This document shows, one piece after another, positions 21,489 to 49,396 of a stretch of DNA of 64,000 nucleotides; within the stretch, counting starts at the first letter, position 1; each line of letters begins with the position of its first letter. The stretch is from Azolla caroliniana. Taxonomy: Eukaryota; Plantae; Polypodiophyta. The DNA lies in NCBI GenBank assembly GCA_043228905.1, contig JBHGNT010000009.1, positions 1,054,001 to 1,118,000 of the forward strand, read 5' to 3'. The position numbers were made by a program, and so were the translations under genes. The notes beneath the pieces were generated by a model that was not told the DNA's origin, did no database searches, and was given only the letters and a program-made list of their open reading frames with translations.

Positions 21489-23681
21489 TTAGCTATTCTT
21501 GTTTCCGATGCCACCATTTGCTGAAGAAACAATGTATGGCTTCTTGACAAATCGGAGCCTTGCGAAAAGGCATAGGGTTAGGAACACGAAACTATAAGCT
21601 GCATATGCTTTTGAGCTCGTATGTGGTGGCTTCGATGCAATAGCCGGATGGAACACGGTCACATAGTAATGAAGACCAACAGACATTGCAAGAGTCCATT
21701 GAACAATAGCAATGGACCTCACAGTCAATTGCCCCAATGCAAAAGAGTAGATCATATTCACCATTACAAAGGTAAGGTAGATCCCATACGCCAATGATTG
21801 AAGCAGCTGAAGGGAGATGTAGCTACTTGCCAATGTATTTTTATAGAAGAAATACATAGGCTCGATGCCGATGATGAAAGACGAGATCCACAAAGTTGCG
21901 AAATATGAAGCTAAGTATGCATTCGCAAAGAATAGGAGCTTCTCCAGGGAGACAAGTGCCTTTATATGCTCGAACAAGTAAACTACAACAATCAAGGGAA
22001 GAAGCAGAATGCCAAATGATATCGTCGTTGCGAGAAATGGAGCCATTTGCTTTCCTATGAGCGGGGAGAAGCTCTCGGTTATTTGTTGGTTCGCGATGTC
22101 GAAATACTCCTTGGATGTGCCAGTCCATTTCAGCACATCGGGACGGAGATGGTCGGCCACTCGTCCGGCCGTCTCGTGTAGTTTGTTCGGCAAGTCGGCT
22201 AGCTCTTGCATTATGTCATAGTCATCATTGGATGGGTCCCTTTGGTCTTGCATTGGATTATTATTGTCAGTTTGTTCAAACCCACCTCGGTTCATCTCTT
22301 CCAGCTGGGATTCGATTTCATTCGTCGCATTTTGGAACTCATCCACAGGTGCTTTTGTTTCTGATACCGATATCAGTTTTTCAGTCTCGGTGTCAGTTTC
22401 AGTCATCTCTGATATCACTAGTGGTTTTTCAGCTTCAGCTTCATCGGACTCTGGGGTCTCTTCCTTTGCTTCTAATATGACTACTGGTTTCTCATTTTCA
22501 GATTCATTGGACTCTGGCACCTCTTCTTCCTTCACTTCCTCTTGTGGTTTCTCAGTCTCGGATTCACTGGAATTCGGCACCTCTTCTTCCTTCACTTCCT
22601 CTTGTGGTTTCTCAGTCTCGGATTCACTGGAATTCGGCACCTCTTCTTCCTTCACTTCCTCTTGTGGTTTCTCAGTCTCGGATTCACTGGAATTCGGCAC
22701 CTCTTCCTTTGCTTCCGATTCGGCTGGAGGTTTTCCGGTTCTGGATTCAGGAGCTGGAATCTCTTCCGATACCGCCTGATTCTTTTCGGTTTCCATTTCA
22801 CTGAGCTCCATCTCATCCTTTCCTTCCAACACCTCTACTGGTTTTCCAGTGTTGCCAGTCTCCACCTCTTCTTCCCTGGCATCTAATACTGCTACTGGTT
22901 CTCTGGTTTCACTGCCCTCCACCTCGATGGTCACATCTGATACTAGTTGCGGTTTTTCGGCTTCGGATTCATCTTCCTTGAAATTTGACCCGGCATTTTC
23001 CTCTACTTTCTCCTTGTTCTCATCACTCGACACATTCTTTTCGTCGGTTCTTTGCTCCACATCGGGGGTCTCCTTGGAGCCACCATCGACTACCACAATG
23101 TGGTTATCTTCATTTTTCGGGCTCGAATCTTCTTCCTTAATCCATGCTTTTTCTTCGTGTTGCAAGCTCAAATCTTGAGTCCCTGGCTTGAATCCCTCTG
23201 CTTGCTTCTTGCCATCTCCTACATTTACATCAAGTGAGGTGGAATCCCCATTCTTATCATCAGTGCTTTCTTTTCTGAAATCTTTCGAATCAACCTCACG
23301 TTCATCCTCTACAGTTGGAATATCGTCTGTAAGAGCTTCCGTGTCAGGCTTGGAGCCAGTGGAGCTTTCTTGATTCTCTTCGCTTTCTTCAAGCCTTTTT
23401 CTAGCCGCAAGATTTCCCCCTTCCTCATCCTTTGGAGCAAAACCCTCATTCTCCGGAATGCTCTGTTTCTCCAGATCTCTCAGATGACCACCACCGACTT
23501 CTTCACCACTCTGATTCTTCCGTGCCTCTGCGCTGATGGCTATGATTTCAGCATAATTTCCTCTCTCACCCAGGAGCTTCCGATGATCAGAGGCATGGGT
23601 ACTGACACAGTCACATTCCAGGGACAAGAACAGGGCTATGGCCAACAGGATGATGAGCCAGGAGGAGGGAGAAGAGCCCAT
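21489..23681 (-). CDS. Single-exon 730-aa protein: signal peptide, Glu-rich low-complexity ectodomain, and a conserved C-terminal multi-pass TM domain (resembles the Arabidopsis AT4G39840 'cell wall integrity/stress response component-like' family)
   Basis: Hydrophobic N-terminus [18 protein letters not shown]; RKLL motif; C-terminus with about 5 TM segments (SLEKLLFFANAYLASYF, GIEPMYFFY, VGLHYYVTVFH..PP). The family assignment is from recall of this domain. Confidence 0.85.
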   Translation of the reverse strand: MGSSPSSWLIILLAIALFLSLECDCVSTHASDHRKLLGERGNYAEIIAISAEARKNQSGEEVGGGHLRDLEKQSIPENEGFAPKDEEGGNLAARKRLEESEENQESSTGSKPDTEALTDDIPTVEDEREVDSKDFRKESTDDKNGDSTSLDVNVGDGKKQAEGFKPGTQDLSLQHEEKAWIKEEDSSPKNEDNHIVVVDGGSKETPDVEQRTDEKNVSSDENKEKVEENAGSNFKEDESEAEKPQLVSDVTIEVEGSETREPVAVLDAREEEVETGNTGKPVEVLEGKDEMELSEMETEKNQAVSEEIPAPESRTGKPPAESEAKEEVPNSSESETEKPQEEVKEEEVPNSSESETEKPQEEVKEEEVPNSSESETEKPQEEVKEEEVPESNESENEKPVVILEAKEETPESDEAEAEKPLVISEMTETDTETEKLISVSETKAPVDEFQNATNEIESQLEEMNRGGFEQTDNNNPMQDQRDPSNDDYDIMQELADLPNKLHETAGRVADHLRPDVLKWTGTSKEYFDIANQQITESFSPLIGKQMAPFLATTISFGILLLPLIVVVYLFEHIKALVSLEKLLFFANAYLASYFATLWISSFIIGIEPMYFFYKNTLASSYISLQLLQSLAYGIYLTFVMVNMIYSFALGQLTVRSIAIVQWTLAMSVGLHYYVTVFHPAIASKPPHTSSKAYAAYSFVFLTLCLFARLRFVKKPYIVSSANGGIGNKNS
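22515..22710. repeat. Coding 60-bp tandem repeat ([20 protein letters not shown], about 3 copies)
   Basis: Lines 22561 and 22621 are identical; the paralogous chimera has two fewer units. Confidence 0.95.
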
Positions 23682-26132
23682 TGATCAAAAGGAAGATTCA
23701 ATGTGTGGATGGGAGGAGAAGAAGAGGAGAAAATCCAATTGTCTGTGTGAGTGAGAGAGAGTGGTGGAGATTTTACCTTTGGGAGTTTCTGAAACCTCTG
23801 CTGTGTTGGAGCTTTAATGGTTTCTTCTTCTCCAAAATATGTACATCTATCTATATGTATATGGTAAAATTTACATACACACACACACACACACTTTACA
23901 ACTCAATATGTATAATGTATGTATATGAATAGAGAGAGAGAGAGAGAGACAGAGAGAGAGAGAGAGACAGAGAGAGGTATAAAGAGAGGATTCCAACACA
24001 AGATATGTGTGTGTCTTGTCTTTTTCTCTCCTCGAAAGAAAAGGGGGGAAGAAGTGGGGAGGAGGCGAGGTATCGATCGATCCATCGATTGCCCCCCAAC
24101 CCAAACACACACAACATTGGTCGGCCGAACATGTGCTACTTTCACACCACCACCACCACCACGTCCTAAGAGACTAGGCCGTCCAAAATACGGCATGGCC
24201 CTTGCTTCCCCCTACATTATTGCCCCAGAAGACCAAATGTCTGCTCCGACATACATCGCTTATCGGTCGAAAACGGGCTACTTTCACACCACCGCATCCT
24301 TAAGAGACTACGCTGTCCGAAAACGGCTTGCCGGCTTCCCTGTTATTTGTCCTCGACCATGCCTGCTCCGACATGGACCGTTCTCGCATCACTCTTCCAC
24401 ACCCCTTGCTTAGGTCTGAGAACAGATGATTTCTGTATCGTCTTCCCAACCTACGCCCCCCCCCCCCCCCCCCCCCCCACTTGAAAACGGATGGCTCCCA
24501 CATCGCCTGCCATTGTTGATCCAACAACATATCCCGAGTTTTTCTTCCAAACCATACTAGTGCACACCCTTCATTTGTACTATCTATGTTTATTATGTTC
24601 ACATTGATGCTAGGTCGGCCCCAATGGCATATCTTCATCAGTTATAACCTTTTTTCACTTTGACAATGCTCACATGAACCACATTTCATCAAAAGGTAAA
24701 ACAACAAAATACCCCAAAGTTTTCAAAAATCAAATGAGAGTATCGATTTGTAGCAGTATGTTGATTTTCTTATCACTATTGGGCCATCAACATATGTACA
24801 TATACCCTTTTGTACGTAACGTTGCTTTCATATGCTACCAAGATCCATATAATCAAAGGGTAAAACATCAAAATACAATATAGGTTTCTAATGCATTTTG
24901 AAATACCCCTACCTAGCCTACAGTTTTTGTACTATACCATGGTACTCTAGTTTAAGTTAGGGGCATTTTGCATAATACATAATGTTGTTTTTCTGAATAA
25001 CCATCTAATAACTTAATCACGTCCTAGTGACTTGATAATCTTGTCATTAAACTAATGTTTGATAATATTTTCATCATGTTAATTGTATATTTACTCTAAT
25101 CACTTTACAAATTGTATCATCAAATGAGCATGAGTGCACAATAATAATTAACATGCTGTTTTTTATTGTTAGGGTGTTCCATGTGTGAATGGGGATAATA
25201 ATGATGTGTTGCTAATTAAAGCAATTATTGAGTATTGAGGGCAATTGAGTCATTAATCAACTTGTGAATAATAAGGTATCTTCAAAGTGAAAATAGCTAA
25301 GGAGAATGTCTCAATGGAAATTACTAGCAAACAAGAGATGAACCGTTTCCCTTAGCAAAAGATGGTGGACCCAGACGAGATACAAGGCAAAGCTTGTTAT
25401 CAACAAGGAAAATAAACGTGAGTTGCTAGACATGCCCATGTTAGAAATCATGCACTTGCAACAATATCGTGTGATTTTGGCCTTATTCAGTATTTTTATA
25501 CCTTATATCTAGGTTAATGCAATAACTTAAAGCTCTTTCAAATTTATGACTACAAAATCCTCATTGGGAAATGATGTGAAAGCATAGACTAGCCATATCA
25601 CACCACATCCAAGTAATGTGATAATTTTAACAACATTATTATGTTCGACAATGACCATAAGAAAATAAGAAATCAAACGTCATTGAGCATGAAATAGAAA
25701 CCTAGGCTACGAATGTACCAATGTGAAGCTCAATTAACATAATAAATATGTTCAAACTTATTATAAACATTTGCATTATAATCTATAGTTGCAATTAACT
25801 GTACAATTAAAAACTAAGATTTTCGTAGATTTTAAAAAAGAATAGTTCTAGCAATTATTAACTTCATGATTTTCACATGATTCATGTTTGTCTTATTTTA
25901 GTTTATCAAAGGTAAGTTTCAAATTTCAATTGTTGTATGATGCACATGTTTACATACCTAATGATCTTAAGAAGCCTTGGAATGTAATGTAGCCATTCAT
26001 TTTTGATATAGATAGATAGATTTTATTCTATCTTCTTCAAACGTAAAATATGACCTATGAGACCAAAAATATTACATTTCATATAATACATGTGAAAGTG
26101 AGTAGCAACTCTTGATGTCCAAGAACTTTGGC

Positions 26133-26136
<4 letters not shown>

Positions 26137-26182
<46 letters not shown>
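26137..26182. repeat. (AG)n microsatellite (shorter paralog at 35749-35768)
   Basis: Direct inspection. Confidence 0.9.
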
Positions 26183-26187
<5 letters not shown>

Positions 26188-29061
26188 AAAGAATTGAAAG
26201 GTAGATTACTTGGTCAGATTTTGTTGTTGGGAAACCTCCAAGATGTCATCACTTGAAGAGTTCCAAATATGTGACTTGGTAAGGTCTCATATATTGCCTT
26301 TTGTGTTAGCATTTCCATCACATGGCTTCTAAATGTGTATAGGATTTCAATTGAGATCTCAATTCTCAACATCATTTGTCTTTCTGTTGTTTGTAGCCGT
26401 ATTTTTTTCTTTTTGTACTCAATACCATATGGCTAGAAACATGATTTCTTGGCATAGGATGATTCTTTTTTATAATGACGTTGATGTTTTCAAGAGTCTC
26501 ATTGGCATGTGGAGAATGCGTAGTGACACGTGGCTAACATACTCTTTTTAAGGTCATTGTTATACTCAATTAGGGAGCATATTTTTGTCCCTAAGAAGCA
26601 AAACATGGTCTGTCCTTCTTGGTATAATTGCCCAAGGTTGGTGCATGCAACAATTGAAGGTGGGAAGCACCACAAACAACTCAATCTTGGGGCCTTTAAG
26701 AATTTGAATATTATGAAATGATTCTTTCTCAAACAATAAGAAATGGGTTACCATTCGGGTTTGGTTTGGAGAAAATATCATAACTTCCATTTAGCCGAAG
26801 TGTTATCCACCCACAATGCTTTATTTGTAATTGCAAGATAATGAGTAGAAAGAGTGGTCGACCCACTTTGAATGCCATGCCAATGAGAATTTATGGTTGG
26901 GGAGTGTTGTCATTTCCTTGTAGTTTTCTCAACATTTAGCATTGATGTGTGTGCAAAAATTGTGGTTGAACACATGTTCACATTTCCTTGTAGGTTTTCC
27001 AACATGTGCGATAGAGAGAACATTAAAAGATGGATTGATATATTGCATTATATTATCATTCTTGGAGGTTCAATATGACTTATGGCAACAAATTCGAAGC
27101 ATTCTCACATAGTATTTCTGGAGTTGAGTAGCGATCCTTGATATTCTAGAGTTTTACCGATGAACAATGTGATTGAGGGAGCACATATTGTGTGTCAAAG
27201 AAAACTATGTAGGGATTGAATTGGATTGGCAACACGTGGAAACTAAACTCAAAAGTGGTTGTAGATGGGGGGTTGTGTCAAAATATGAAACTTAGACTCA
27301 CAAACTTATTCAAGGCAATATATGCATAGTTGACGAAAACTAAAATATGTGGGGATTGGATTGGATTGACATAATGTGGAAACCAAACTCAAATGTGATC
27401 AAAGGAGAAAGATTGTATGAAAGTGTAAAACGAGACTCACAAACTTGTTGAAGGCAAAATATGCGTAACTTACAAGTTTCCTTGCTTGTTCACGAATGCT
27501 TATCTCCCATCAAAGAGAATGTGAGCTATGCCATATTGAACGAATGGTGCAGAAAGCGATGGGCTCTAGCATGGTGTTACTATTTGGAGAAGAGAATGTT
27601 TTCATTGTTTGGTGTAGCATACATAATATAATCCGAGAAAGGTCAATCTCCACAACATGCCAATGTTGTGATACATTAGTGGTGCAAAGAAAGTTCATTA
27701 ATCTATGAATGTATTGACACATGCATTCCTAATCTCTAGTTCTAGTCATCTACATAATCGTTTGTAAATTTAGCTTGTCGGGAACTAACATACCACTCTT
27801 ACACTCCCATGATTACAATACAATTAACAAGGGGTTTTGTATTGTGGCGTTCTTTTATGAAGGAGAGAGACTTGTAGGGGGGGAGTTTGAAATATGAGAA
27901 AAATGATTGGAATGCGGTGTATTAATGTTGTCTCAAAATTTGACAACAGCATAGTTGCATGTCGCCTTTTACCTCATATGTAGAGAAAATGGCTAAAAAT
28001 GGAGTTTACTTCATCTACAGAAAAAGATGTAGCCCAATCTCGTAGAGAGATACACACAAATATGTGTGTATAGTTCATGTTGATTATATTCGAGACCAAG
28101 CACTAGATAGTAAATGCATATCTCTCATTTACAACCGGTAGTAAATGTGTTTTCACGTCCTCTACTTTACACCACACATAGCATAGTAGTTCTTACAAAT
28201 TACTATATGTTGATGTGTCAACGAGTTGTTTAACCTTCAAGACTCTATTTTCCTATCCCATATCAATGTCTCTTGATGAAATAATTGTACAATGTGATAA
28301 ATGTAAAAGACAATAGATGACTCAAGGCACAATCTTTTATCGATGCGCTCCTTCTCATATAGTCTACAACCCCATGCCACATTTCAAGCGGTGAATTTCT
28401 CAAAAGGCTTCAAAAACAACAAATAAATTACCATGGTCTCATATAAGGTTCAGGTTTAATTTTAATGACTTATAAAATGACTTTGCTTCCATGCATGCCC
28501 TCTGTAAATTTCTCCAAGGCATGCTGGCCCCTTTTGTTGTGCATAATTGATGATGACGGTGTATGTAACATATTGTGGATGTATTTACTTATGTTGGTAG
28601 CAATTTTTCATTAGCAAGGAAAGGAAAAGTTAATGCAAGCAAAGGTTGGGCCTTTTCTTTGGGCAACACAAAAAAGTGATAAATAAAGCAAGACTTTGCC
28701 AACAATAATTTACATTCACTTTTTCTTGATTGCATTGATCTGAAAAGTACTATGATGTACCATTACTCTTGTGGTCCACTATGAAATTGCAGAATGAAGT
28801 GCTACCCATTTAGTTGTCTTGTCCCCTTAAAATGAATGAGTTATTGATAAGAGAGAAAATTGTTTAAGGACCTCAAATCTATTTGCTTCATGAGGTCTCA
28901 TATATACATGTTTACAAAAGTTTTCCTAGAGATTCTACCATCCAAGGATATGTATTCGGATTCCTCTTGTTACCAAGAAACCAAAAACAAAGTTTAGCCT
29001 TGGGTAAGTGCAATAGAACAGGATTGCGATTTTAGTAGTTAATATTGGTATTACATTAATC

Positions 29062-31315
29062 TCAAGCACTGCCCCTTCTCAAAGGCACATTGTGATTATG
29101 CTTTCCTTCATAAGTTGTCCAAACTGTCCTTGGATCAGCAGAGGATCGCTCAACATGTTTCCTCATGCCACATCCTAGATTTGTACATCTGTAGTAGCTT
29201 CTGCAAGTCACAATATTTCAAAGGGTTAAAGAGTTCAATGATCATCTGAATCTTTCTCTCTCTCACACACACATATGCACACAATAGGGAAAATTTTCTT
29301 AAGTCGTGCACGAAATACATCACACACATTAATTATAAAAGCTATGACTTGAATGTGGAAACCATGTTGCAAATCAATCCACGCAAGCAATTCAATCTTT
29401 TAATTAAACTCTAGACTTGCATTCAACGCCCAAGGTTTAGTTCAGAGTTTTTTCAAAGCTTGCAGAAAGCTATCTATGGTAAGGAATTAATTATGCATAT
29501 ATGATTAGATACATCAAATATGCAGAATTGAAGATTTATAAATTTGAAATTTATATTTGTATATGGTTTCATTGCTAAAACAAAATCATACAAAAATTTG
29601 TCAAAAGAGAGTTCACACCTGGGAAAATTATGGCCTTTGACTACCTTCTGGCCATATTTGCGCCATCTATACCCATCATCGAGAATATCAACTTCGCTTA
29701 TTGTTTGTACAACTATACGGGACTCCCGAACAGTTGTGATTGGTACTGGATATGAATGTGGCATTTCCCCACCGCTGTCCATTCTCCTGATACATTAAAC
29801 AATATAGGTGAATACATACTTGTCAGGAAGCATACTGGAGGGTTCTAAAACACAAAGCAAAAGAAAGAAGTAAACAAAAAAAGATACAATTCAAGGAACC
29901 CAAATGAGATGGCAATAATACCTTCGGCGCTTCGAGTCTTGTTCTTCTTCACAATCACTTTTGGTTTCACCTTCTTCATCGCTAGGGGAACAGAACGATT
30001 GTTCAGGAGTTCCGGTCAATCCGGTATGAGAAATAACCACTGATGAAGAGGAGAAATCAGCTGAATTCTTATCTGAATCCACCTTTTCTTCATGTGCTTG
30101 CAATTGGATCCCTCTCTCTTGAATCATCATGTGGGCAGGATTTCGTGATGATCTCCGTGTTGTTTGTGGCTTTGGGTGGTTATGTTCCCCTTTGTATGTA
30201 ATTTCAGTTATTTCTCCTTCATGAGAACATTCCACATGCTTCTTCACAAGACAATGAGGATGAGTACATTTATAATAGCTGCGACGACGCCCGGTACCTT
30301 TTAATTGCTTTTGCCCATACTTCTTCCAGTTATACCCATCTGAAGAGGGCCTTCCATTCATAGATAACCCATGATGAGCTAGAATCATTTCAGTTTCAGT
30401 GGACTTTTTATGAGGCTCAGATGTTTGTGCTCTCATATTATTTAATGTTTCATGGCACCCTTGAGTGTTCATGTATGGATCTGGCGAATCAGAATTCAAC
30501 ATTGACGTATCGTTAGTTGGTTGATCAGTGGGTTTATTTTCAAATTCGAAAGCCTCTTCGTTTGAAATTCCAAATGATCCCTACAGAAAAACATTCATTG
30601 CTTTGATACTAACCTTATTGATTATAATACCAAAAACTACTGATTCTAAATAAGATATAGCAAGACTCACCGTGCCATTTATGTGAGACAACCCAGTTCT
30701 TGTTACTACAGGGTGTGGCCAAAAGACAAAGTCATTGGCTTGTTGGGCACTGTTCTCATTTTCAGATTCATTGGATTCTGGCACCTCTTCTTCCTTCACT
30801 TCCTCTTGTGGTTTCTCAGTCTCGGATTCACTGGAATTCGGCACCTCTTCCTTTGCTTCCGATTCGGCTGGAGGTTTTCTGGTTCTGTATTCATCAGTGC
30901 TTTCTTTTCTGAAATCTTTCGAATCAACCTCACGTTCATCCTCTACAGTTGGAACATCGTCTGTAAGAGCTTCCGTGTCAGGCTTGGAGCCAGTGGAGCT
31001 TTCTTGATTCTCTTCGCTTTCTTCAAGCCTTTTTCTAGCCGCAAGATTTCCCCCTTCCTCATCCTTTGGAGCAAAATCCTCATTCTCCGGAATGCTCTGT
31101 TTCTTCAGATCTCTCAGAAGACCACCACCGACTTCTTCACCACTCTGATTCTTCCGTGCCTCTGCACTGATGGCTATGGTTTCAGTATAATTTCCTCTCT
31201 CACCCAGGAGCTTCGTATGATCAGAGGCATGGGTTATGACACAGTCACATTCTAGGGACAAGAACAGGGCTATGGCCAACAGGATGATGAGCCAGGAGGA
31301 GGGAGAAGAGCCCAT
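29062..31315 (-). CDS. Chimeric gene, about 536 aa: signal peptide and acidic region of the membrane protein fused in frame to a two-domain group I WRKY. Exons 31315-30671, 30580-29922, 29786-29619, 29200-29062
   Basis: Exon 1 switches from ...ESNESENE (membrane protein) to NSAQQANDF... (WRKY) at 30753-30760. All GT/AG sites are intact and the 1611-nt CDS has no internal stop. Expression is unknown. Confidence 0.8.
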
Positions 31316-31578
31316 TGATCAAAAGGAAGATTCAATGTGTGGATGGGAGGAAAGGAAGAGGAGAAAAGCCAATTGTCTGTGTGAGTGAGAGAGAGTGGTG
31401 GAGATTTTACCTTTGGGAGTTTCTGAAACCTCTGCTGTGTTGGAGCTTTAATGGTTTCTTCTTTTCCAAAATATGTACATCTATCTATATGTATATGGTT
31501 AACCTTTACACACACACACTTTATAACTCAATATGTATAATGTATGTATATGAATAGAGAGAGAGAGAGAGAGAGAGA

Positions 31579-33599
31579 ACCGATTTCTATTCGGAGGTCA
31601 GTTAGTCAAGGATGCCCAGTGCTTTACTATTCACTATTGTGACACATCATCCTATTCTTGTTAAGTTACACGATATGGCTATGGAGGAAGAATTGCTCGG
31701 ACTAAGGTTGCCATCAGGGAAGCCATGTATTGTTTAAGCTCTCGCAGATGACCATATTATGTTTTTGGCACCTAATCGGGAAAATATTAGTAAGACAAGA
31801 GATGTGTGGGAATTGTTTTCAAATGCTTCGGGGTTGAGAATTAATATACATAAATCTGTCCTCATTTCATGTACAGAACAAGATGTGTTAGGGTTGGGGT
31901 GGTCAGGAAAGATAGTACATGGTGGTATGATTTGTCGTCATCTTGGATATCCAATTGGGGTGGAAGTTTCTCATGTGAAACTTATTGAGTGGGTATCCAA
32001 AAGGTTGGAGGATAAGTTTATGTATTGGAGGTCTCAATTTTGGTCTTTTCATGTATGACTTAAGGTGGTCCAATCGATTATGGTCTCTATGGTATCTTAT
32101 TATCTTTCTTTGCTCCCATGGTCAAAGAAAGCTCTTGAAATGTTGTCACGCTCGATGCGAATGTTATTATGGAAAAGAAAAGGGAAAAGTGCCTTGTCAT
32201 GGTTGACATGGGATCATGTTTGTACTCTGAAGCGTCTTGGTGGGGCATCAATATTGAATCTATATGAGCATATGGTGGCTCGTCGATTTACTTTCATTTG
32301 ATTCATGTTTGAAGGTGTACAACCTTGGACAGAAATGGTGGCATACTTTATAGAGAAGAATGGAATAAAGCTTGGAAACATGAAGGTTGAAGCGAATTGG
32401 TGGAATGTAATTAATTCTGATAGGGATGTCAAATGTACAGGGTCTATGATAGTTAATCATTTGTTGACATCTTGGCAAAGTATGTTGGATTTTGTGGAAT
32501 GACATTCCCCACAAGAAAGGGGATGTGCCAATTCATTACAAATGGAGGTTTTGGCAACATCAAGGTTGTTGAGGTGGGAAGGTAAACAAATTCTTAACCT
32601 TTAATTTAATCGGATGGCTAGATTGGGTTTGGTAACAGTTAAGGATGCTATGTTGGTTTCACAAAGAAGATTAATGGCTTTTTGAACAATAAGATCAACA
32701 TTTCGTATTCCAAAAGGTTATAACTTTATTTGGGATAAGTTGCAACAAATACTATCTTCGCATGAGCCAATTCCTGATTTAGATGGGCGATCTCAAGAGC
32801 TTGATTGGAGGTTTGTTGGAAATAAGAGATTGACTATGATCTCAACGAATGTTGCTTATCACAAGTTGATTGAAAAACATAAGTGGTTGGAAGAAAGGGT
32901 TATAAAGATATGGGGTTTTCATAAGCCCATTACTTGGTGGTTTCATGTGATCAAGGCAGGTTGGTGTTCTCGACTGATGCTACGAGCCAAGGTATTTATT
33001 TGAAGAGTTATGGTTGGAGCTTTACCATTAGGGGATGCATTAAAAAGAAGAAACATTACTAAAGGATTGCGTTTCTTTTGTTCGGTGGAATTGGAACATA
33101 GTAGGCATCGATTTATTTCATGCCCGATGGCAAGGATGGTTTGGAGGTGTATTAGTTTAGTGTGGATGTCTCTAACACGAGTAAGTCTATCTTCCTTCAG
33201 TTGGGTTTTTGCATATATGGAGAACAATGAACCGATGCCTCATTTTCAAATTATTTTTGAGTTCTTGAGGTATTGGGGGCTATGGTTCAATTGGAATATG
33301 CGGAATGCCTTCATTTTTTATTCGCAAGTTGGGGTGAGAAAATATGTTCTAAAGTTGAAAGGAATTCTTTTGTGGCAATTGACAGTGCTAGAGAAGTCAC
33401 AAAATCTCAACCAGAAAGAGAGAGAACTCTACAAGGACACATATCATCATACTCGCCATTTGAATTGGTGTAGGGTAGCATTGAGTTTGGTGTCGTAGTA
33501 TTCTTTAGATCCCTTGATAGAAGGGTTCTATACTTTGTAGTAAGTTACTCATGGTGGTATTTTTCCTTTCGTAATGAAAGCCATTATTTACGAAAAAAA
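31579..33599 (+). mobile_element. 5'-truncated, decayed L1-type LINE inserted into a (GA)n tract about 260 bp upstream of the chimera ATG
   Basis: RT motifs RRSVSQGCP, ALADD, ASGLRINIHKS, RHLGYPIG; zf-RVT (HRFISCPMARMVW, WFNWNMRN); A-rich tail; several premature TGA stops; absent from the paralogous site near 23950. Confidence 0.9.
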
Positions 33600-36500
33600 G
33601 AGAGAGAGGTATAAAGAGAAGATTCCAACACAAGATATGTGTGTGTCTTGTCTTTTTCTCTCCTCAAAAGAAAAGGGGGGAAGAATTGGGGAGGAGGCGA
33701 GGAATCGATCGATTGATCCATTGCCCCCCAACCCAAACACACACAACATTGGTCGGCCGAACATGTGCTACTTTCACACCACCACCACCACCACGTCCTA
33801 AGAGACTAGGCCGTCCGAAATACGGCATGGCCGTTGCTTCCCCCTACGTTATTGCCCCAAAAGACCAAATGTCTACTCCGACATACATCGCTTGTCGGTC
33901 GAAAACGGGCTACTTTCACACCATCGCATCCTTAAGAGACTAGGTTGTCTGAAAACGGCTTGCCTGCTTCCCTATTATTTGTCCTCGACCATACATGCTC
34001 CGACATGGACCGTTCTCGCATCACTCTTCCACACCCTTGCTTAGGTCCGAGAACGGATGATTTCTGTATTGTCTTCCCAACCTACCCCCCCCGCTTGAAA
34101 ATGGATGGCTCCCACATTGCCCGCCATTGTTGATCCCACAACATATCCCGAGTTTTTCTTCCAAACCATACTAGTGCACACCCTTCATTTGTATTATCTA
34201 TGTTTATTATGTTCACATTGATGCTAGGTCGGCCCCAATGGCATATCTTCATCAGTTATAACCTTTTTTCACTTTGACAATGCTCACATGAACCACATTT
34301 CATCAAAAGGTAAAACAACAAAATACCCCAAAGTTTTCAAAAATCAAATGAGAGTATCAATTTGTAGCAGTATGTTGATTTTCTTATCACTATTGGGCCA
34401 AAAACATATGTACATATACCCTTTTGTACGTAACGTTGCTTTCATATGCTACCAAGATGCATATAATCAAAGGGGGAAACATCAAAATACAATATAGGTT
34501 TCTAATGCATTCTGAAATACCCCTACCTAATCTAGAGTTTTTGTACTATACCATGGTACTCTAGTTTAAGTTGGGGGCATTTTGCACAATACATAATGTT
34601 GTTTTTCCGAATTACCATTTAATAACTTAATCACGTCCTAGTGACTTGATAATCTTGTCATTAAGCTAATGTTTGATAATATTGCCATCATGTTAATTGT
34701 ATATTTACTCTAATCACTTTACAAATTGTATAATCAAATGAGCATGAGTGCACAATAATAATTAACATGTTGTTTTTTTATTGTTAGGGTGTTCCATGTG
34801 TGACTAGGGATAATAATGATGTGTTTCTAATTAAAGCAATTATTAAGTATTGAAGGCAATTGAGTCATTAATCAACTTGTGAATAATAAGGTATCTTTAA
34901 AGTGAAAATAGCTAAGGAGAATGTCTCAATGGAAATTACCCACAAACAAGAGATGAGCCGTTTCCCTTGGCAAAAGATGGTGGACGCAGACGAGATACAA
35001 GGCAAAGCTCGTTATCAACAAGGAAAATAAACGTGAGTTGCTAGACATGCCCATGTTAGAAATCATGCACTTGCAACAATATCGTGTGATTTTGGCCTTA
35101 TTCAGTATTTTTATACCTTATATCTAGGTTAATGCAATAACTTAAAGCTCTTTCAAATTTATGACTACAAAATCCTCATTGGGAAATGATGTGAAAGCAT
35201 AGACTAGCCATATCACACCACATCCAAGTAATGTGATAATTTTAACAACATTATTATGTTCGACCATGACCATAAGAAAATAAGAAATCAAACATCATTG
35301 AGCATGAAATAGAAACCTAGGCTACGAACGTACCAATGTGAAGCTCAATTAACATAATAAATATGTTCAAACTTATTATAAACACTTGCATTATAATCTA
35401 TAGTTGCAATTAACTGTACAATTAAAAACTAAGATTTTCGTAGATTTTAAAAAAGAATAGTTCTAGCAATTATTAACTTCATGATTTTCACATGATTGAT
35501 GCTTGTCTCATTTTAGTTTATCGAAGGTAAGTTTCAAATTTCAATTGTTGTATGATGGAGATGTTTACATCCTAATAATCTTAAGAAGCCTTGGAATGTA
35601 ATGTAGCCATTCATTTTTGATATAGATAGATAGATCTTATTTTATCTTCTTCAAAGTTAAAATATGACCTATGAGACCAAAAATATTACATTTCATGTAA
35701 TACATGTGAAAGTGAGTAGCGACTCTTGATGTCCAAAAACCTTGGCACAGAGAGAGAGAGAGAGAGAGATTTTAAAGAATTGAAAGGTAGATTACTTGGT
35801 CAGATTTTGTTGTTGGGAAACCTCCAAGATGTTATCACTTGAAGAGTTCCAAATATGTGACTTGGTAAGGTCTCATATATTGCCTTTTGTGTTAGCATTT
35901 CCATCACATGGCTTCTCAATTTGTATAGGGTCTCAATTGAGATCTCAACATCATTTGTCTTTTTGTTGTTTGTAGCCGTATTTTTTTTCTTTTTGTACTC
36001 AATATCATATGGCTAGAAACATGATTTCTGGGCATAGGATGATTCTTCTTTATAATGACGTTAATGTTCTCAAGAGTCTCGTTGGCATGTGGAGAATGCA
36101 TAGTGACATGTGGCTTACATACTCTTTTTAAGGTCACTGTTATACTGAATTAGGTAGCATACTTTTGTCCTTAAGAAGCAAAACTTGGTGTGTCCTTCTT
36201 GGTATAATTGCCCGAGGTTGGTGCATGCAACAATTGAAGGTGGGAAGCACCATAAACAACTCACTCTTGGGGCTTTTAACAATTTGAATATTATGAAATG
36301 ATTCTTTCTCAAACAATAAGAAATGGGTTACCGTCGGGGTTTGGTTTGGAGAAAATATCATAACTTCCATTTAGCCGAAGGGTTATCCACCCACAATACT
36401 TTATTTGTAATTGCAAGATCATGAGTAGAAAGAGTGGTCGACCCACTTTGAATGCCATGCCAATGAGAATTTATGGTTGGGGAGTGTTGTCATTTCCTTG

Positions 36501-37176
36501 TAGTTTTCTCAACATTTAGCATTGATGTGTGTGCAAAAATTGTGGTTGAACACATGTTCACATTTCCGTGTAAGTTTTCCAACATGTGAGATAGAGAGAA
36601 CATTAAAAAATAGATTGATATATTGCATTATATTATCATTCTTTGAGGTTCAATGTGACTTATGGCACCAAATTCGAAGCATTCTCACATAGTATTTTTG
36701 GAGTTGATTAGCAATCGTTAATATTCTAGAGCTTTACCGATGAAAAATGTGATTGAGGGAGCACATATTGTGTGTCAAGGAAAAATATGTAGGGATTGAA
36801 TTGGATTGGTAACACGTGGAAACTAAACTCAAAAGTGGTTGTAGATGGGGGATTGTGTCAAAATATGAAACTTAGACTCACAGACTTGTTCAAGGCAAAA
36901 TATGCATAGTTGACGAAAACTAAAATACGTGGGGATTTGATTGGATTGACATAATGTGGAAACCAAACTCAAATGTGATCAAAGGCGAAAGATTGTATGA
37001 AAGTGTAAAATGAGACTCACAAACTTGTTGAAGGCAAAATATGCGTAACTTACAAGTTTCCTTGCTTGTGCACAAATGCTTATCTCCCATCAAAGAGAAT
37101 GTGAGCTACGCCATATTGAACCAATGGTGTAGAAAGCGATGGGCTCTAGCATGGTGTTACTATTTGGAGAAGAGAA

Positions 37177-37394
37177 TGTTTTCATTGTTTGGTGTAGCAT
37201 ACATAATATAATCCGAGAAAGGTCAATCTTCACAACATGCCAATGTTGTGATACATTAGTGGTGCAAAGAAAGTTCATTAATCTATGTTTTCATTGTTTG
37301 GTGTAGCATACATAATATAATCCGAGAAAGGTCAATCTCCACAACATGCCAATGTTGTGATACATTAGTGGTGCAAAGAAAGTTCATTAATCTA
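37177..37394. repeat. 109-bp tandem duplication specific to copy 2
   Basis: tgttttcattgtttggtgtagc...gttcattaatcta occurs twice here and once at 27597-27705. Confidence 0.9.
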
Positions 37395-38771
37395 TGAATG
37401 TATTGACACATGCATTCCTAATCTCTAGTTCTAGTCATCTACATAATCGTTTGTACATTTAGCTTGTCGGGAACTAACATACCACTCTTACACTCCCATG
37501 ATTACAATACAATTAACAAGGGGTTTTGTATTGTGGCGTTCTTTTATGAAGGAGAGAGACTTGGGGGAGGGGAGAGGTTGGAATATGAGAAAAATGATTG
37601 GAAATGCAGTTTATTAATGTGGTCTCAAAATTTGACAACAACATAGTTGCATGTCGCCTTTTACCTCATCTGGAGAAAAATGACTAGAAATGGAGTTTAC
37701 TTGATCTACAGAAAAAGATGTAGCCCAATCTCGTAGAGAGATACACACAAATAGGTGTGTATAGTTCATGTTGACTATATTCAAGACCAAGCACTAGATA
37801 GTAAATGCATATCTCTCATTTACAACAGGTAGTAAATGTGTTTTCATGTCCTCTACTTTATACCACACATAGCATAGTAGTTCTTACAAATTACTATACG
37901 TTGAGTTGTCAACGAGTTGTCAACCTTGAAGACTCTATTTTCCTATCCCATATCAATTTCTCTTGATGAAATAATTGTACAACGTGATAAATGTAAAAGA
38001 CAATAGATGACTCAAGGCACAATCTTTTATCAATGTGCTCCATCTCATCTAGTATACAACCCCATGCCACATTTCAAGGTAAAAAACAGTCATGGGTTGA
38101 ATTTCTCAAAAGGCTTCAAAAACAACAAATAATTTACCAAGGTCTCATATAAGGTCCAGGTTTAATTTCAATGACTTATAAAATGGTTTTGCTTCCATGG
38201 ATGCCCTCTGTAAATCTCTCCAAGGCATGCTACTGGCCCCTTTTGTTGTGCATAATTGATGACGTTGGTGTATGTAACATATTGTGGATGCATTTACTTA
38301 TGTTGGTAGCAATTTTTCATTAGCAAGGAAAGGAAAAGTTAATGCAAGCAAAGGTCGGGTCTTTTCTTTGGGCAACACAAAAAAAGTGATAAATAAAGCA
38401 AGACTTTGCCAACAATAATTTACATTCACTTTTTCTTGATTGCATTGATCTGAAAAGTACTATGATGTACCATTACTCTTGTGGTCCACTATGAAATTGC
38501 AGAATGAAGTGCTACCCAATTAGTTGTCTTCCCCCCTTAAAATGAATGACTTATCGATAAGAGAGAAAATTGTTGAAGGACCTCAAATCTATTTGCTTCA
38601 TGAGGTCTCATAAATACATGTTTACAAAAGTTTTCCTAGAGATTCTACCATCCAAGGATATGTATTCGGATTCCTCTTGTTACCAAGAAACCAAAAACAA
38701 AATTTAGCCTTGGGTAAGTGTAATAGAACAGGATTGCGATTTTAGTAGTTAATATTGGTATTACATTAATC

Positions 38772-41158
38772 TCAAGCACTACCCCTTGTCAAAGGCACAT
38801 TGTGATTATGCTTTCCTTCATAAGTTGTCCGAACTGACCTTGGATCAGCAGAGGATCGCTCAACATGTTTCCTCACGCCACATCCTTGATTTGTACATTT
38901 GTAGTAGCTTCTGCAAGTCACAATATTTCAAAGGGTTAAAGAGTTTAATGATCATCTCAATCTTTCTCTCTCACACACACATATGCATACAATAGGGAAA
39001 TTTTTCTTAAGTCGTGCACGAAATACATCACACGCATTAATTATAAAAGCTATGACTTGAATGTGGAAACCATGTTGCAAATCAATCCACGCAAGCACTT
39101 CAATCTTTTAATTAAACTCTAGACTTGCATTCAATGCCCAAGGTTTAGTTCAGAGTTTTTTCAAAGCTTGCAGAAAGCTATCTATGGTAAGGAATTAATT
39201 ATGCATATATGATTAGATGCATCATATATGTTGAATTGAAGATCTATATTAAAATTTGAAATTTATATTTGTATATGGTTTCATTGCTAAAACAAAATCA
39301 TACAAAAATTTGTCAAAAGAGAGTTCACACCTGGGAAAATTATGGCCTTTGACTACCTTCTGGCCATATTTGCGCCATCTATACCCATCATCGAGAATAT
39401 CAACTTCGCTTATTGTTTGTACAACTACACGGGGCTCGCGAACAGTTGTGATTGGTACTGGATAGGAATGTGGCATTTCCCCACCGCTGTCCATTCTCCT
39501 GATACATTAAACAATATAGGTGATACATACTCTTCAGGAAGCATACTGGAGGGTTCTAAAACACAAAGCAAAAGAAAGAAGTAAACAAAAAAAGATACAA
39601 TTCAAGGAACCCAAATGAGATGGCAATAATACCTTCGGCGCTTCGAGTCTTGTTCTTCTTCACATTCACTTTTGGTTTCACCTTCTTCATCGCTAGGGGA
39701 ACAGAACGATTGTTCAGGAGTTCCGGTCAATCCGGTATGAGAAATAACCACTGATGAAGAGGAGAAATCAGCTGAATTCTTATCTGAATCCACCTTTTCT
39801 TCATGTGCTTGCAATTGGATCCCTCTCTCTTGAATCATCATGTGGGCAGGATTTCGTGATGATCTCCGTGTTGTTTGTGGCTTTGGGTGGTTATGTTCCC
39901 CTTTGTATGTAATTTCAGTTATTTCTCCTTCATGAGAACATTCCACATGCTTCTTCACAAGACAATGAGGATGAGTACATTTATAATAGCTGCGAGGACG
40001 CTCGGTACCTTTTAATTGCTTTTGCCCATACTTCTTCCAGTTATACCCATCTGAAGAGGGCCTTCCATTCATAGATAACCCATGATGAGCTAGAATCATT
40101 TCAGTTTCAGTGGACTTTTTATGAGGCTCAGATGTTTGTGCTCTCATATTATTTAATGTTTCATGGCACCCTTGAGTGTTCATGTATGGATCTGGCGAAT
40201 CAGAATTCAACATTGACGCATCGCTAGTTGGTTGATCAGTGGGTTTATTTTCAAATTCGAAAGCCTCTTCGTTTGAAATTCCAAATGATCCCTACAGAAA
40301 AACATTCATTGCTTTGATACTAACCTTATTGATTATAATACCAAAAATTACTGATTCTAAATAAGATATAGCAAGACTCACTGTGCCATTTATGTGAGAA
40401 AACCCAGTTCTCGCTACTATAGGGTGTGGCCGAAAGACAAAGTCATTGGATTGTTGGGCACTGTTCTCATTAGTTTTATCACCATCATCAGTTTCTATTC
40501 TCTTTTCAAGAGTGTTCAAAGATGCCAAAAATGAGCCAGTGGTGGGAGAAGGATCAGCCTACATTTTAGAAATACATGTAAAGAATTTTATCAGAAGAAT
40601 CTTCAATTGACACCAAATGTATAAATGAATTAAGATCAAGTATAGAAAAGAAGTAAACAAAATAAGACATACCAATCCTGCAGTAAAGAGAACAGGAGAC
40701 TCTAATAGCATTGTTGGGCTGAGTCCGGGCGGGAGAGTAAAATACATAGAAGGAATTGGTAGCCTCGATGGCATCATTGACTTGTATCGTGCAGTGTTAT
40801 TGCCAGACAGAGAAAGATTCCCTGCAGATTCATCTCTGTCATCCAATACATTTTTGTCGGATTTTTCATCAGGATTTATATCCGAGCTAGTTGTACCATC
40901 TTTATTATCATTCACATTATGATTGAATCCTTGTTCGCTGCCTAGCCAAGGAAAAGTAGGCGATTCCATGTTTGAAAAGGGTCTTACATCTGTATAATAT
41001 GGCTCATGCTCAGAAAATATGCTAGAACTGTAGGTCATTGGGTTTGGTGTAGTGTCATCACATCCACCTCGAAGAAAAGCGTGATTTGTATTACTGTTGT
41101 GTGGTGAAACGACTAATGCTGGACACGAATTAGCTGTTGCAATGCCACCTTCTCCCAT
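38772..41158 (-). CDS. Group I WRKY transcription factor, about 542 aa. Exons 41158-40673, 40558-40382, 40291-39633, 39498-39331, 38910-38772; 5'UTR exon at about 42590-42424
   Basis: N-terminal [39 protein letters not shown] (SP cluster); [16 protein letters not shown] with C2H2; [20 protein letters not shown] with the conserved R-type intron and C2H2 (CTNQGC..HNH). Confidence 0.95.
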
Positions 41159-45399: not shown

Positions 45400-46795
45400 T
45401 ACCAAAAAATTTTAATTGGTTCTTAGGGGTTGACCAACCTTGGAACTCTTTCTTGGGTGTACACAGGTTATTTCCTAGGGAAACTACTTACTAGGAATTT
45501 GAAAGAGCTTGTAATTTGAAGGATACTATTCTTGAAGTTGGACCATCAAATCTAGTTCAAGTTTGTATGGATAATGCTGCAAATTGTGTGGTTGCGAGAC
45601 ATATTATAGAAAAGGAGTGGCCATCTATAATTTACACTAGATGCACTTGCCATTGTGTTGATTTGTTGTTGGAGGATATTGCCAAATGTGGTTGGATTGA
45701 TGCCATTTTGCGGTCAACTATGAAGATTAGTGGTTTCATAACTAGAAAACAATATGCTTTGGCCATGTTTCGCAAGTTTAGTGGGAAAGACTTGCTTAAA
45801 CCTTCTACGACTAGGTTTTCTTACAGTTTTATTGTGTTATCGAATTTGTTGGATGATAAAGTATATGGTGGTTTGAGAAGAATGGTGGTTAGCGAACAAT
45901 GGTGTTATTGGAATGGTGCTAAAACACAGAAAGCAAAGGAGATTATGTCAATTGTATTGGATGTTAACTTTTGGGTAGATGTAAAGATGATTGTCAAGGT
46001 ATGCAAACCAATTTTAAAGCTTCTTCATTTGACTGATAGGGAAGGTGCTACAATGGGATTGATTTATCAATTTAAACAACAAATGTTGATGGATATAAAC
46101 AATATGGCAGAAATTGATCCTATCAAGCTTGATGAGATAAAAGGGTGTTGCATACATAGACTAACAATGTTGGAATCTCCATTGCAGGCAACGGGATATG
46201 TCTTGCATCCTTTATGGACAACAAATGGTCAAGAAATAGATCATCATCTACAAATGGGTTGGATGAAAACAATCATGCTTTATGCTAGTGGTAATATAGT
46301 TTTACAAAATGCTTTGTTAGATGAGTTTTATGCATATAGAAAACAAGCATAAGATTTGTTTCAAGTTCCATTAACAAATGATGCTAATAGATTAAGCACA
46401 CCAATCAAATGGTGGGAAACTTTTGCAATTAGAGTGTTATCTCAAGGTACAAGTGCATCGTCGTGTGAAAGGAATTGGAGTACATTTTCATTAATGCATA
46501 CTAAAAGGAGAAATAGATTGAGTCCAAATCATGTGAGAAATTGGTTTTCTTGCACACAAACCTTTGTATTCTTGAGAACATTAAAGAAAGAGGTTTCAAT
46601 CCTATTGAGGTTACTATTGACATGATTGAGAAAGAAAATAATGACGAACGGTTATTGGTGTTGCAAAGTGAACAAGAAACACAAGAAGTTGATGAAAATG
46701 AGAGTTTCACCAATGTGATGGCTTATCTTGAGGATAATGCACAAGATGAGGATGATGATTTTGAAGATGATGATATCAACTTGAATGAAGATTAG
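45400..46795 (+). mobile_element. hAT transposase pseudogene (DUF659 and dimerization domain)
   Basis: EVGPSNLVQVCMDNAANC, CTCHCVDLLLEDI, LLKPSTTRF, PIKWW, AIRVLSQGTSASSCERNWSTF...KRRNRL; contains stops and frameshifts. Confidence 0.9.
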
Positions 46796-46989: not shown

Positions 46990-49190
46990 GTATGGTATTT
47001 ACCATTCTTCGAGGATGTTTACCATACTCGAATGATTGAAACATTCTCGAATGTGAATGCACGTATGGTACATATAGTTCATACTATGATTTGGAAAGTC
47101 GGAGATCTTGGTGGTCGGACACCTATGTGGGTCATACGGTAGGAAACCATCTTTAGCAAAGGTCGAAGCTATTTCGGCGATGAAGGAAGGATGCAAGTCG
47201 ACCACAGAGGTTCGACGATTTTTGGGGGCCCATGCCTTCTACCACATTTGGATCCCGCACTACGTGCATATTGCCAAGCCACTCTTAGACAACTTACTGA
47301 AAAAAAGTTGGAAGTTCAAATGGGGCGAAGAGTACACGGAGGTTGTGAGGAGACTAAAGGGCATGCTGATGGCAGCACCAACTCTCCGGAAGCGGTCTAT
47401 GGGAAAGAATCCCCAATTTATGTGACGGTCGACACCAGTCTGACTGAAATTGGATGGGTAAGAAATTAGGAGTAGGAAGGCGGTACATTGTTCGTCATCC
47501 AATTCAAAGCTAAAATTTTGATTGAGTGACAACGAGGATATGCCTAGGTCAAGGGGGAGCTATGAGGGGGAGCTATGGGGTATCATTTTAGTGGTAAAGG
47601 CCGACAAGGACTATCTAATCGGGACGGAGGTGATTATCGAGATGGACTGTCTCCTGATCCTCGGGATGATATCTGGATGCGCGACTCTAGATTTGGCTAT
47701 GCTCAAATGGATCGCGTACATTAAGTCCCCGAATCTGGAAATTCGACATATTTCCGGAAAGGACAATACTATGGCCGATATTCTATTGAGAACATAGTTA
47801 GAAGGAGAGGACGGCATGGTATCAGAGGATGAGGAATGAACAGAGCACTTTGACCCTGCACGCGTTCAACAAAGACGACTACGAAGCGGAGTGGTTGTTG
47901 GTCGGGAAGTTCTTGAGCAGAATGGTACCAGATGCGTCGTGGATGAAGGAAGAGGTGGACCATATTTGGAAGAAGGATTATAGGTACTTTTGGCGACACC
48001 CGAAGAAAGGGACCAGAACACTACTTCGAGTTGTGACACGTAAAGAGGACTAGTCAGTGCTGCTGACGAAATTTCATGAGAGTCCTTGGTCTGGACATCG
48101 TGGGACTTGGGCATGTACAACGATGTGCATCACGTCGTGACGACGTGTGAAAGCTGCCAAGTACATTCCGGAATCCGTCACTGTGACGAGTTGCGTCCAA
48201 CCTACCCACCAACCATTCACTTCAATTGGATGGTCGACTTAGTGATGATGCTGATGCGGGTAGGCCAAATGAGGTACCTAATACTAGTGAGGGAGGATCT
48301 GAGGAACTAGGTGGAAGGACGAGCCTTGAAGAACAAGACGACCACAACCGTATGCCAGTTCCTGATCAAAGATGTGACCTGATGATACAAATGCGTGGGA
48401 ATAATTGTGGCCGACCAAGGAGAGTTAGACGCGCACGAAGCTACAAAACTGTCTGAACGGCTAGGGGTCAAGCTCTCCCTCACAACGACATATAATCTGG
48501 AGGCCAATGGTAAGGGCGAACGGGGGCACAGGCTGATTGTGAAGGCCATCGTACATGCATGTGATGGTCGTGTCGGGAATTGGCCATGATTCCTGCCATA
48601 AACATTGTGGGCCGATCGAACTATGCATAGTTTAGTAACATGGTACATGCCGGCCGAGCTCATGTTCGGACAAAAGCCGATCATGCCAGTAGAGAGGACG
48701 ATCATTTAATGGATGGTGATCGACTGGTCGGACGAAATGAGTCGGGAAGAGTTGTTGGCCACGCGAACTCGACAACTCGAGAGGCATCCAGAAGACGTGG
48801 AGCGAGCACGGGAGAGGGTGAAGGAGGCGTGAATGAAGAACAAGGAACAGTTCGACGAGATCCACCGAATGCAACCAAGGAAGATCGAAGAAGTTGACTG
48901 AGTGTTGGTCTACGACTGTAGCCTCGACAACTAGCACCGGTAACGACGCGAAAATTCGCAAGGTGATTCAGGCCATACGTGGTGACGAGCACCATTGACA
49001 ATGCCATGTACCACCTCTCGGAGCTCGACGAGTCGAGGATGATCGTGGTGGTTGCGGGAAAGAAGGTCAAGCTCTTCAAGAAGCGGTAGGAGGCAAAACT
49101 GGATATGGAGATAGAGGACGAAGATGTTGATGAGGACGAGGAGCTAGATAAGGATTGGATAAGCGATGGTTCGAAGGAGGACGATTAAAA
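46990..49190 (+). mobile_element. Decayed Ty3/Gypsy pol fragment (RT end, RNase H, integrase), no LTRs
   Basis: TEVRRFLG, VTVDTSLTEIGW, IRHISGKDNTMAD, TCESCQ, WMVDLV, IVADQGE, YNLEANGKGERGH; many stops. Confidence 0.88.
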
Positions 49191-49231
49191 GGGTTGTAAA
49201 TAATTAGGTAATTAACAAAAGGTTAATTAAT

Positions 49232-49356
49232 AGGGAAAAGTACTAGGATACCCCTGGAAGTTCTTCTATTTTACCTTAATGCCCCTGGAAGTTCCAAATT
49301 TACCAAACTACCCCTATGTCCAAAAAATTACACTTTATAAAATTACACTTTCTCCC
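49232..49356. mobile_element. Short Mutator-like TIR remnant at the junction of two Gypsy elements
   Basis: GGGAAAAGTAC...TACCCCT and ...TTACACTTTCTCCC ends with repeated cccctggaagtt; no TSD. Confidence 0.45.
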
Positions 49357-49396
49357 AGTCTGCACGATACGCGTGCAATTCCACCGCTTGGGCTGC

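Follow-up and report, generated by a model that had tools for sequence, protein, structure and literature searches.

Four species of Oryza hold 310 fusion genes, formed at 63 per species per million years; 44% are expressed and 90% of the fusion pairs showed purifying selection (PMC9199173). The chimeric gene described here lies in a 64,000-nucleotide stretch of the genome of the fern Azolla caroliniana, hereafter the window, in which position 1 is the first letter. Like the Oryza fusions it has two parents, an in-frame fusion, retained parents, and a transcript. It differs from them in that its parents are direct neighbors, joined by one tandem duplication with an 8-bp microhomology, and in that the fusion changes the predicted compartment of the product while no purifying selection is seen.

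Its downstream parent is a group I WRKY transcription factor gene. Like AtWRKY33, NbWRKY8, and OsWRKY53, the chimera has two WRKY domains with C2H2 zinc ligands, and its N-terminal domain carries the WKKYGQK heptad of what is, judged from the sequences, a fern group I subclade. Unlike them, it has a predicted signal peptide and an acidic arm in place of the SP-cluster region, and conserved E, P, P, and V residues are changed. The SP cluster is the MAPK target of group I WRKYs, and their activity depends on it (PMC4043820).

Two further WRKY proteins invite comparison. Grape VvWRKY17, a 189-aa, one-domain protein of untraced origin, has a predicted N-terminal signal peptide (PMC11172563) before a WRKY domain with a WKKY heptad, as the chimera does; whereas it is known from prediction only, the Azolla locus displays both parents, the breakpoint, and fusion RNA. 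RRS1 carries an integrated WRKY decoy (PDB 5w3x/7p8k; PMC8685902) and is likewise a case of a WRKY domain inside a foreign protein. The chimera differs in having no TIR, NB-ARC, or LRR; no paired NLR was seen, and its 5' partner is acidic, signal-peptide-bearing, and without a Pfam match. A decoy-like role, proposed in an earlier reading made from the letters alone (the sequence-only reading), found no support, because an NLR part is missing and the predicted signal peptide leads away from the compartment of the effectors: a lumenal WRKY would not meet cytosolic or nuclear ones. Our literature search found no such chimera described for a fern WRKY and no report of this locus.

Two Neighboring Genes Joined by a Tandem Duplication

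The chimera is the product of a ∼8.3-kb microhomology-mediated tandem duplication that joined two adjacent genes. Self-BLAST resolves two tandem units in the window (table 1) that are 94.5–96% identical to each other. The duplicated segment starts within the single-exon membrane-protein gene and ends within exon 2 of the five-exon WRKY gene, both on the minus strand, and the 8 bp at the junction are common to the membrane gene's final acidic repeat (22489–22496) and to WRKY exon 2 (40464–40471). The breakpoints thus lie inside two adjacent same-strand genes, with an intact parent on each side. The sequence-only reading had the membrane gene's 5' end joined in frame to the second coding exon of the WRKY gene and both parents intact, and these points hold: the parental frames are open over 730 and 542 codons. 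Inspection of the duplicated spacer for a complete gene that could explain retention of the duplicate showed no convincing open reading frame. A 110-bp tandem duplication (37176–37396) is present in unit 2 only.

Table 1 Features of the Chimeric Gene, Its Parents, and the Duplication (Window Coordinates)
Feature	Position	Strand	Description
Membrane parent	21489–23681	-	Single exon, 730 aa; signal peptide, acidic region, conserved multi-pass C-terminus
Duplication unit 1	22489–30760		8,272 bp; 5' part of membrane parent, spacer, WRKY half of chimera; self-BLAST
Chimera exon 4	29062–29200	-	C-terminal zinc finger with K495R, Q499L, V503M, R518W, then stop
Chimera exon 3	29619–29786	-	End of KRRRR basic patch, P457S, V459I, start of C-terminal WRKY domain
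Chimera exon 2	29922–30580	-	Holds N-terminal WRKY domain
N-terminal WRKY domain	30176–30328	-	WKKYGQK heptad; E312G, P314R; Pfam PF03106, E 7.6e-23
Chimera exon 1, coding part	30671–31315	-	Codons 1–215; membrane-gene codons, then remainder of WRKY exon 2
Fusion junction	30753–30760		8-bp microhomology; also in L031, L033, and RNA run X1
Duplication unit 2	30753–40471		9,719 bp including LINE and 510-bp deletion; 5' half of chimera, spacer, 3' part of parent WRKY; self-BLAST
Acidic region	30755–31228	-	aa 30–187; 30% D/E; two of the parent's four repeat units
In-frame 510-bp deletion joint	30891–30893	-	Parent codons 142–311 missing; joint spanned by RNA contig
Predicted signal peptide	31232–31315	-	aa 1–28; hydropathy peak 2.73; similar N-terminus in fern homologues
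Transcribed 5' leader	31316–31404	-	From duplicated membrane-gene promoter; no upstream ATG; RNA contig
LINE-type ORF2 fragment	31579–33600	+	5'-truncated; 8 internal stops, no frameshift; not in unit 1
WRKY parent	38772–41158	-	Five exons, group I, 542 aa, SP-cluster region; transcribed and spliced (X1)

Adiantum and Ceratopteris supply the nearest named relatives of either parent. The membrane parent, 62–66% identical to its relatives over the membrane domain, has no Pfam family match and only atlas hits below 0.9, and its predicted model (pLDDT 68) has no Foldseek match in PDB. Its family is kept from Chara to ferns with a signal peptide, an RKLL motif, a long acidic region, and a multi-pass C-terminus. 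The nearest named relatives of the WRKY parent are Adiantum L7F22_010020 and Ceratopteris KP509_21G017100; its WKKYGQK N-terminal heptad (40039–40059), seen also in L003, L004, L005, and L027, is common to its paralogues and some Adiantum and Ceratopteris genes.

Elsewhere the window has exons that belong to a gene for a class II tRNA synthetase (2443–3075) and to a second gene, for which the V-SNARE C-terminal match is weak (9526–10332). It also has open reading frames for DUF659, a hAT-type transposon-associated domain (45516–46352), and DUF7869 (57603–58301), and a GC-rich region of LTR retrotransposon sequence in which RNase H and integrase domains occur (52283–53407 and surroundings, about 47000–57000).

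The Chimeric Gene and Its Predicted Product

The exon model bears out the proposed 536-codon frame, which ends in a stop codon, has no internal stop, and is interrupted by introns of 90, 135, and 418 bp, all three with GT..AG borders. The exon reading frames had no exact match on record in the protein collection, and the membrane parent's first 145 aa, searched within a size range that admits a 536-aa fusion, brought up one non-fused homologue only, which makes for a weak blank. Both WRKY domains keep their heptad and the CX4CX22-23HXH pattern that define group I. In the window copy neither heptad is altered, the PRSYY strand retains its R and K/R, and every zinc ligand is in place; the closest solved chains to the exon 2 domain are the N-domains 6j4f and 6j4g. 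The SP-cluster region, of which several group I members have one, is found in the parent and is gone from the chimera, as the sequence-only reading had stated. The same reading held that a transmembrane domain had been lost; the membrane part is indeed missing, but hydropathy and the predicted model of the parent indicate that it is a conserved multi-pass bundle of about 5–6 helices rather than a single segment.

The sole hydrophobic stretch that remains (by hydropathy) is aa 3–28, and ER targeting of the product is plausible, a prediction drawn only from the hydropathy of this stretch and the similar N-termini of homologues. For membrane tethering, an N-out anchor would have to stay uncleaved and leave the DNA-binding domain on the cytosolic side, and the same stretch is the sole candidate for it. 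Directly behind the predicted signal peptide, the RKLL kept in fern homologues has become TKLL; RKLL fits the R-(R/K)-L-X preference of SBT6.1/S1P (PMC7162652). The predicted product has six N-glycosylation sequons. Initiation of a WRKY at Met 30502, raised previously, is unlikely by leaky scanning because 11 out-of-frame ATGs must be passed before it on the chimeric mRNA.

Expression

Run X1 can be read as RNA because all three introns are skipped in it and there is no cover in bins inside the longest. The parental WRKY transcript in it agrees with the parent gene of the window. The chimera-specific transcripts that had been looked for are also there: one 163-nt contig covers 30670–30806, with 46 letters on the membrane side of the junction, and is spliced into exon 2, while others cover 30850–30920 and 30891–31404 and span the deletion joint, all with 0 mismatches. 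For the chimera, this one RNA run shows transcription from the borrowed promoter and splicing of the first intron at least, with most of exon 1 and the start of exon 2 covered. In X1 it seems to be expressed on a scale comparable to that of the parents, though contigs cannot give levels. Contigs of X7 and X14 have only parental letters at the junction and no junction RNA, an absence that in contigs is no proof of silence, and the word share of X7 (0.47) is what a parent-only sample would be expected to give. Run X7 also shows a parental WRKY with a 3-nt insertion at 29975.

Occurrence in Other Assemblies and Samples

Near-identical host contigs occur in a series of ENA metagenome assemblies. 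Two further samples have short-read contigs that cross the same junction, with 98.2% (L031) and 98.9% (L033) identity; in four contigs (L028, L032, L006, and L034) this point is occupied by the parental WRKY. At 30703 and 30721, letters of the chimera type stand next to parental ones in DNA run X5, and DNA runs X2–X5 hold 0.67–0.79 of the words of 30300–31400, of which a parent-only genome is expected to hold about 0.52. The junction itself or chimera-type words were found under at least three organism labels. Short-read contigs are mosaics of copies, and alleles could not be phased from them. The junction-bearing L031 has an in-frame 3-bp deletion near its position 1120 (window 29700–29702), just before the C-terminal WRKY domain, and two WRKY copies of the parental type are present over 30672–30760 in each of runs X14 and X5, suggesting heterozygous or hybrid samples.

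Age and Later Changes

The sequence-only reading called the gene newborn, a description that the divergence of the two units contradicts. Between the two copies there are 39 coding substitutions (Ks 0.03) and a divergence of 3.9% over 5,800 non-coding positions; the nearest outgroup contigs stand at Ks 0.08. At generic plant rates, uncalibrated for this locus, this corresponds to up to a few million years. That age is to be taken as a maximum, since already different haplotypes may have given rise to the two units; at three positions where L034 has the letter of the parent, L006 has that of the chimera.

The in-frame 510-bp deletion and the LINE insertion likewise argue against a newborn gene; both had been overlooked, as had the loss of two 60-bp repeats. 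L033 carries at least one more acidic repeat unit than the window chimera. The LINE fragment, ∼2 kb long, sits in a GA repeat 265 bp upstream of the chimera start codon, and its zf-RVT match (E 3.4e-5) is below the Pfam cut-off.

Selection on the Chimera

Comparison of the WRKY half with its parent gives 18 non-synonymous and 5 synonymous substitutions (Ka 0.022, Ks 0.023, Ka/Ks 0.97). The parent WRKY against outgroups gives Ka/Ks values of 0.29 and 0.64 for near ones and 0.06–0.08 for a far one, the latter in the domain-rich part. Among 95 sites conserved in at least 85% of 113 two-domain WRKYs, five are changed in the chimera only (E312G, P314R, P457S, K495R, and V503M) and none in the parent only; the neutral expectation is 3.4–4.5, and the 5:0 split gives p=0.06 on small counts. 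K495R is, on comparison with its homologues, benign, because Arg is the natural residue at this site in AtWRKY1-C (PMC1851648) and is seen in parent-like contigs. In the junction-bearing contig L033 the C-terminal heptad carries R477I and the basic patch R433C; being unphased, these changes are not assigned to the chimera.

No stop or frameshift occurs in the chimera frame of the window, L031, or L033; under drift, the chance of an intact frame is 0.03–0.2, or 0.01–0.07 when the in-frame deletion is counted. From these comparisons the WRKY half appears to evolve at about the neutral rate, and the data favor relaxed constraint, with too few changes to exclude weak selection.

Fate of the Chimeric Protein

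The reading that we prefer, with a probability of about 0.6, is that the gene is an expressed, still open, ER-targeted, and near-neutral chimeric duplicate. Through the tandem duplication, the last two-thirds of a group I WRKY came to stand in frame behind the promoter, predicted signal peptide, and acidic region that the membrane gene supplied. The first ATG leads into the hydrophobic stretch shared by homologues, which most likely directs the product to the ER. Lacking the membrane bundle, this product is predicted to be a soluble lumenal protein that is secreted or degraded. Such a product would lack access to W-box DNA, so that its WRKY domains, useless and harmless, would drift and the gene would be tolerated beside an intact parent while both parents keep their jobs. 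Points counted for drift are the lost RKLL, the LINE next to the promoter, and the missing junction RNA in X7 and X14; counted against it are the frame intact in three samples, the retained DNA-contact residues and zinc ligands, and the small counts.

An alternative, which we consider improbable, is that selection in the fern maintains a protein, secreted or resident in the ER, that is made up of a transcription factor's two WRKY domains. On this account, likewise a minor contender, selection keeps the frame, and the acidic arm together with the folds of the WRKY zinc fingers has a role in the ER, apoplast, or leaf cavity that involves no DNA binding, which would relax DNA-related constraint; a role in the symbiotic Azolla leaf cavity is perhaps conceivable. 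It is consistent with the frame intact in three samples, where the 510-bp and 3-bp deletions are both in frame, with a signal peptide whose protein sequence has not changed over aa 1–26, with the kept zinc ligands and spliced RNA, and with the spread of the junction or chimera-type words over several organism labels. Against it stand a whole-frame Ka/Ks of 0.79, not different from 1, the lack of junction RNA in two other runs, and a literature search that found no tested secreted WRKY. Cys2His2 zinc fingers are also unlikely to fold normally in the oxidizing ER.

We rate just as low the chance that translocation escape or an uncleaved anchor yields a cytosolic or nuclear WRKY with an acidic arm, competing with the parent at W-boxes. 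Because the SP cluster is lost, any nuclear fraction of the product is predicted to be uncoupled from MAPK input, a consequence in line with the documented SP-cluster dependence of group I WRKYs. The start codon context is only moderate (T at -3), the KRRRR patch is kept in the window copy, and so are the residues needed for DNA binding in AtWRKY1-C (PMC1851648). Yet the first ATG opens straight into a strong hydrophobic stretch, so that bypass requires failed translocation, conserved structural sites are changing, and the other sample (L033) has R477I and R433C.

Less probable still is that there is no full-length mRNA, with transcripts ending early in exon 2, or that a short WRKY is made from Met 30502 through a separate internal start. 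X1 shows only parental letters in the downstream exons, from 30513 on, and its junction contig stops 26 letters into exon 2. Contig assembly drops the minority side of SNP differences, which would explain the missing chimera alleles and leaves X1 silent on full-length transcription; in addition, all downstream splice sites are intact, and the run of out-of-frame ATGs weighs against the internal start. An assembly artefact, conceivable given tandem units 95–96% identical and a possibly heterozygous genome, was rejected as having next to no chance of being true, the same junction being carried by two independent short-read assemblies and by RNA, with chimera-type alleles in DNA run X5.

Chimeras made by local duplication are common in plants, but few show their parents, exact breakpoint, later edits, and fusion RNA together. 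This locus therefore offers a clean test of what follows when a transcription factor gains a signal peptide, drift after mislocalization or a new role, and the present evidence points to relaxed selection rather than to a new mechanism. If the selected secreted protein should nevertheless prove to be the true reading, the locus would record a traceable move of a nuclear DNA-binding fold to the secretory pathway with a new role.
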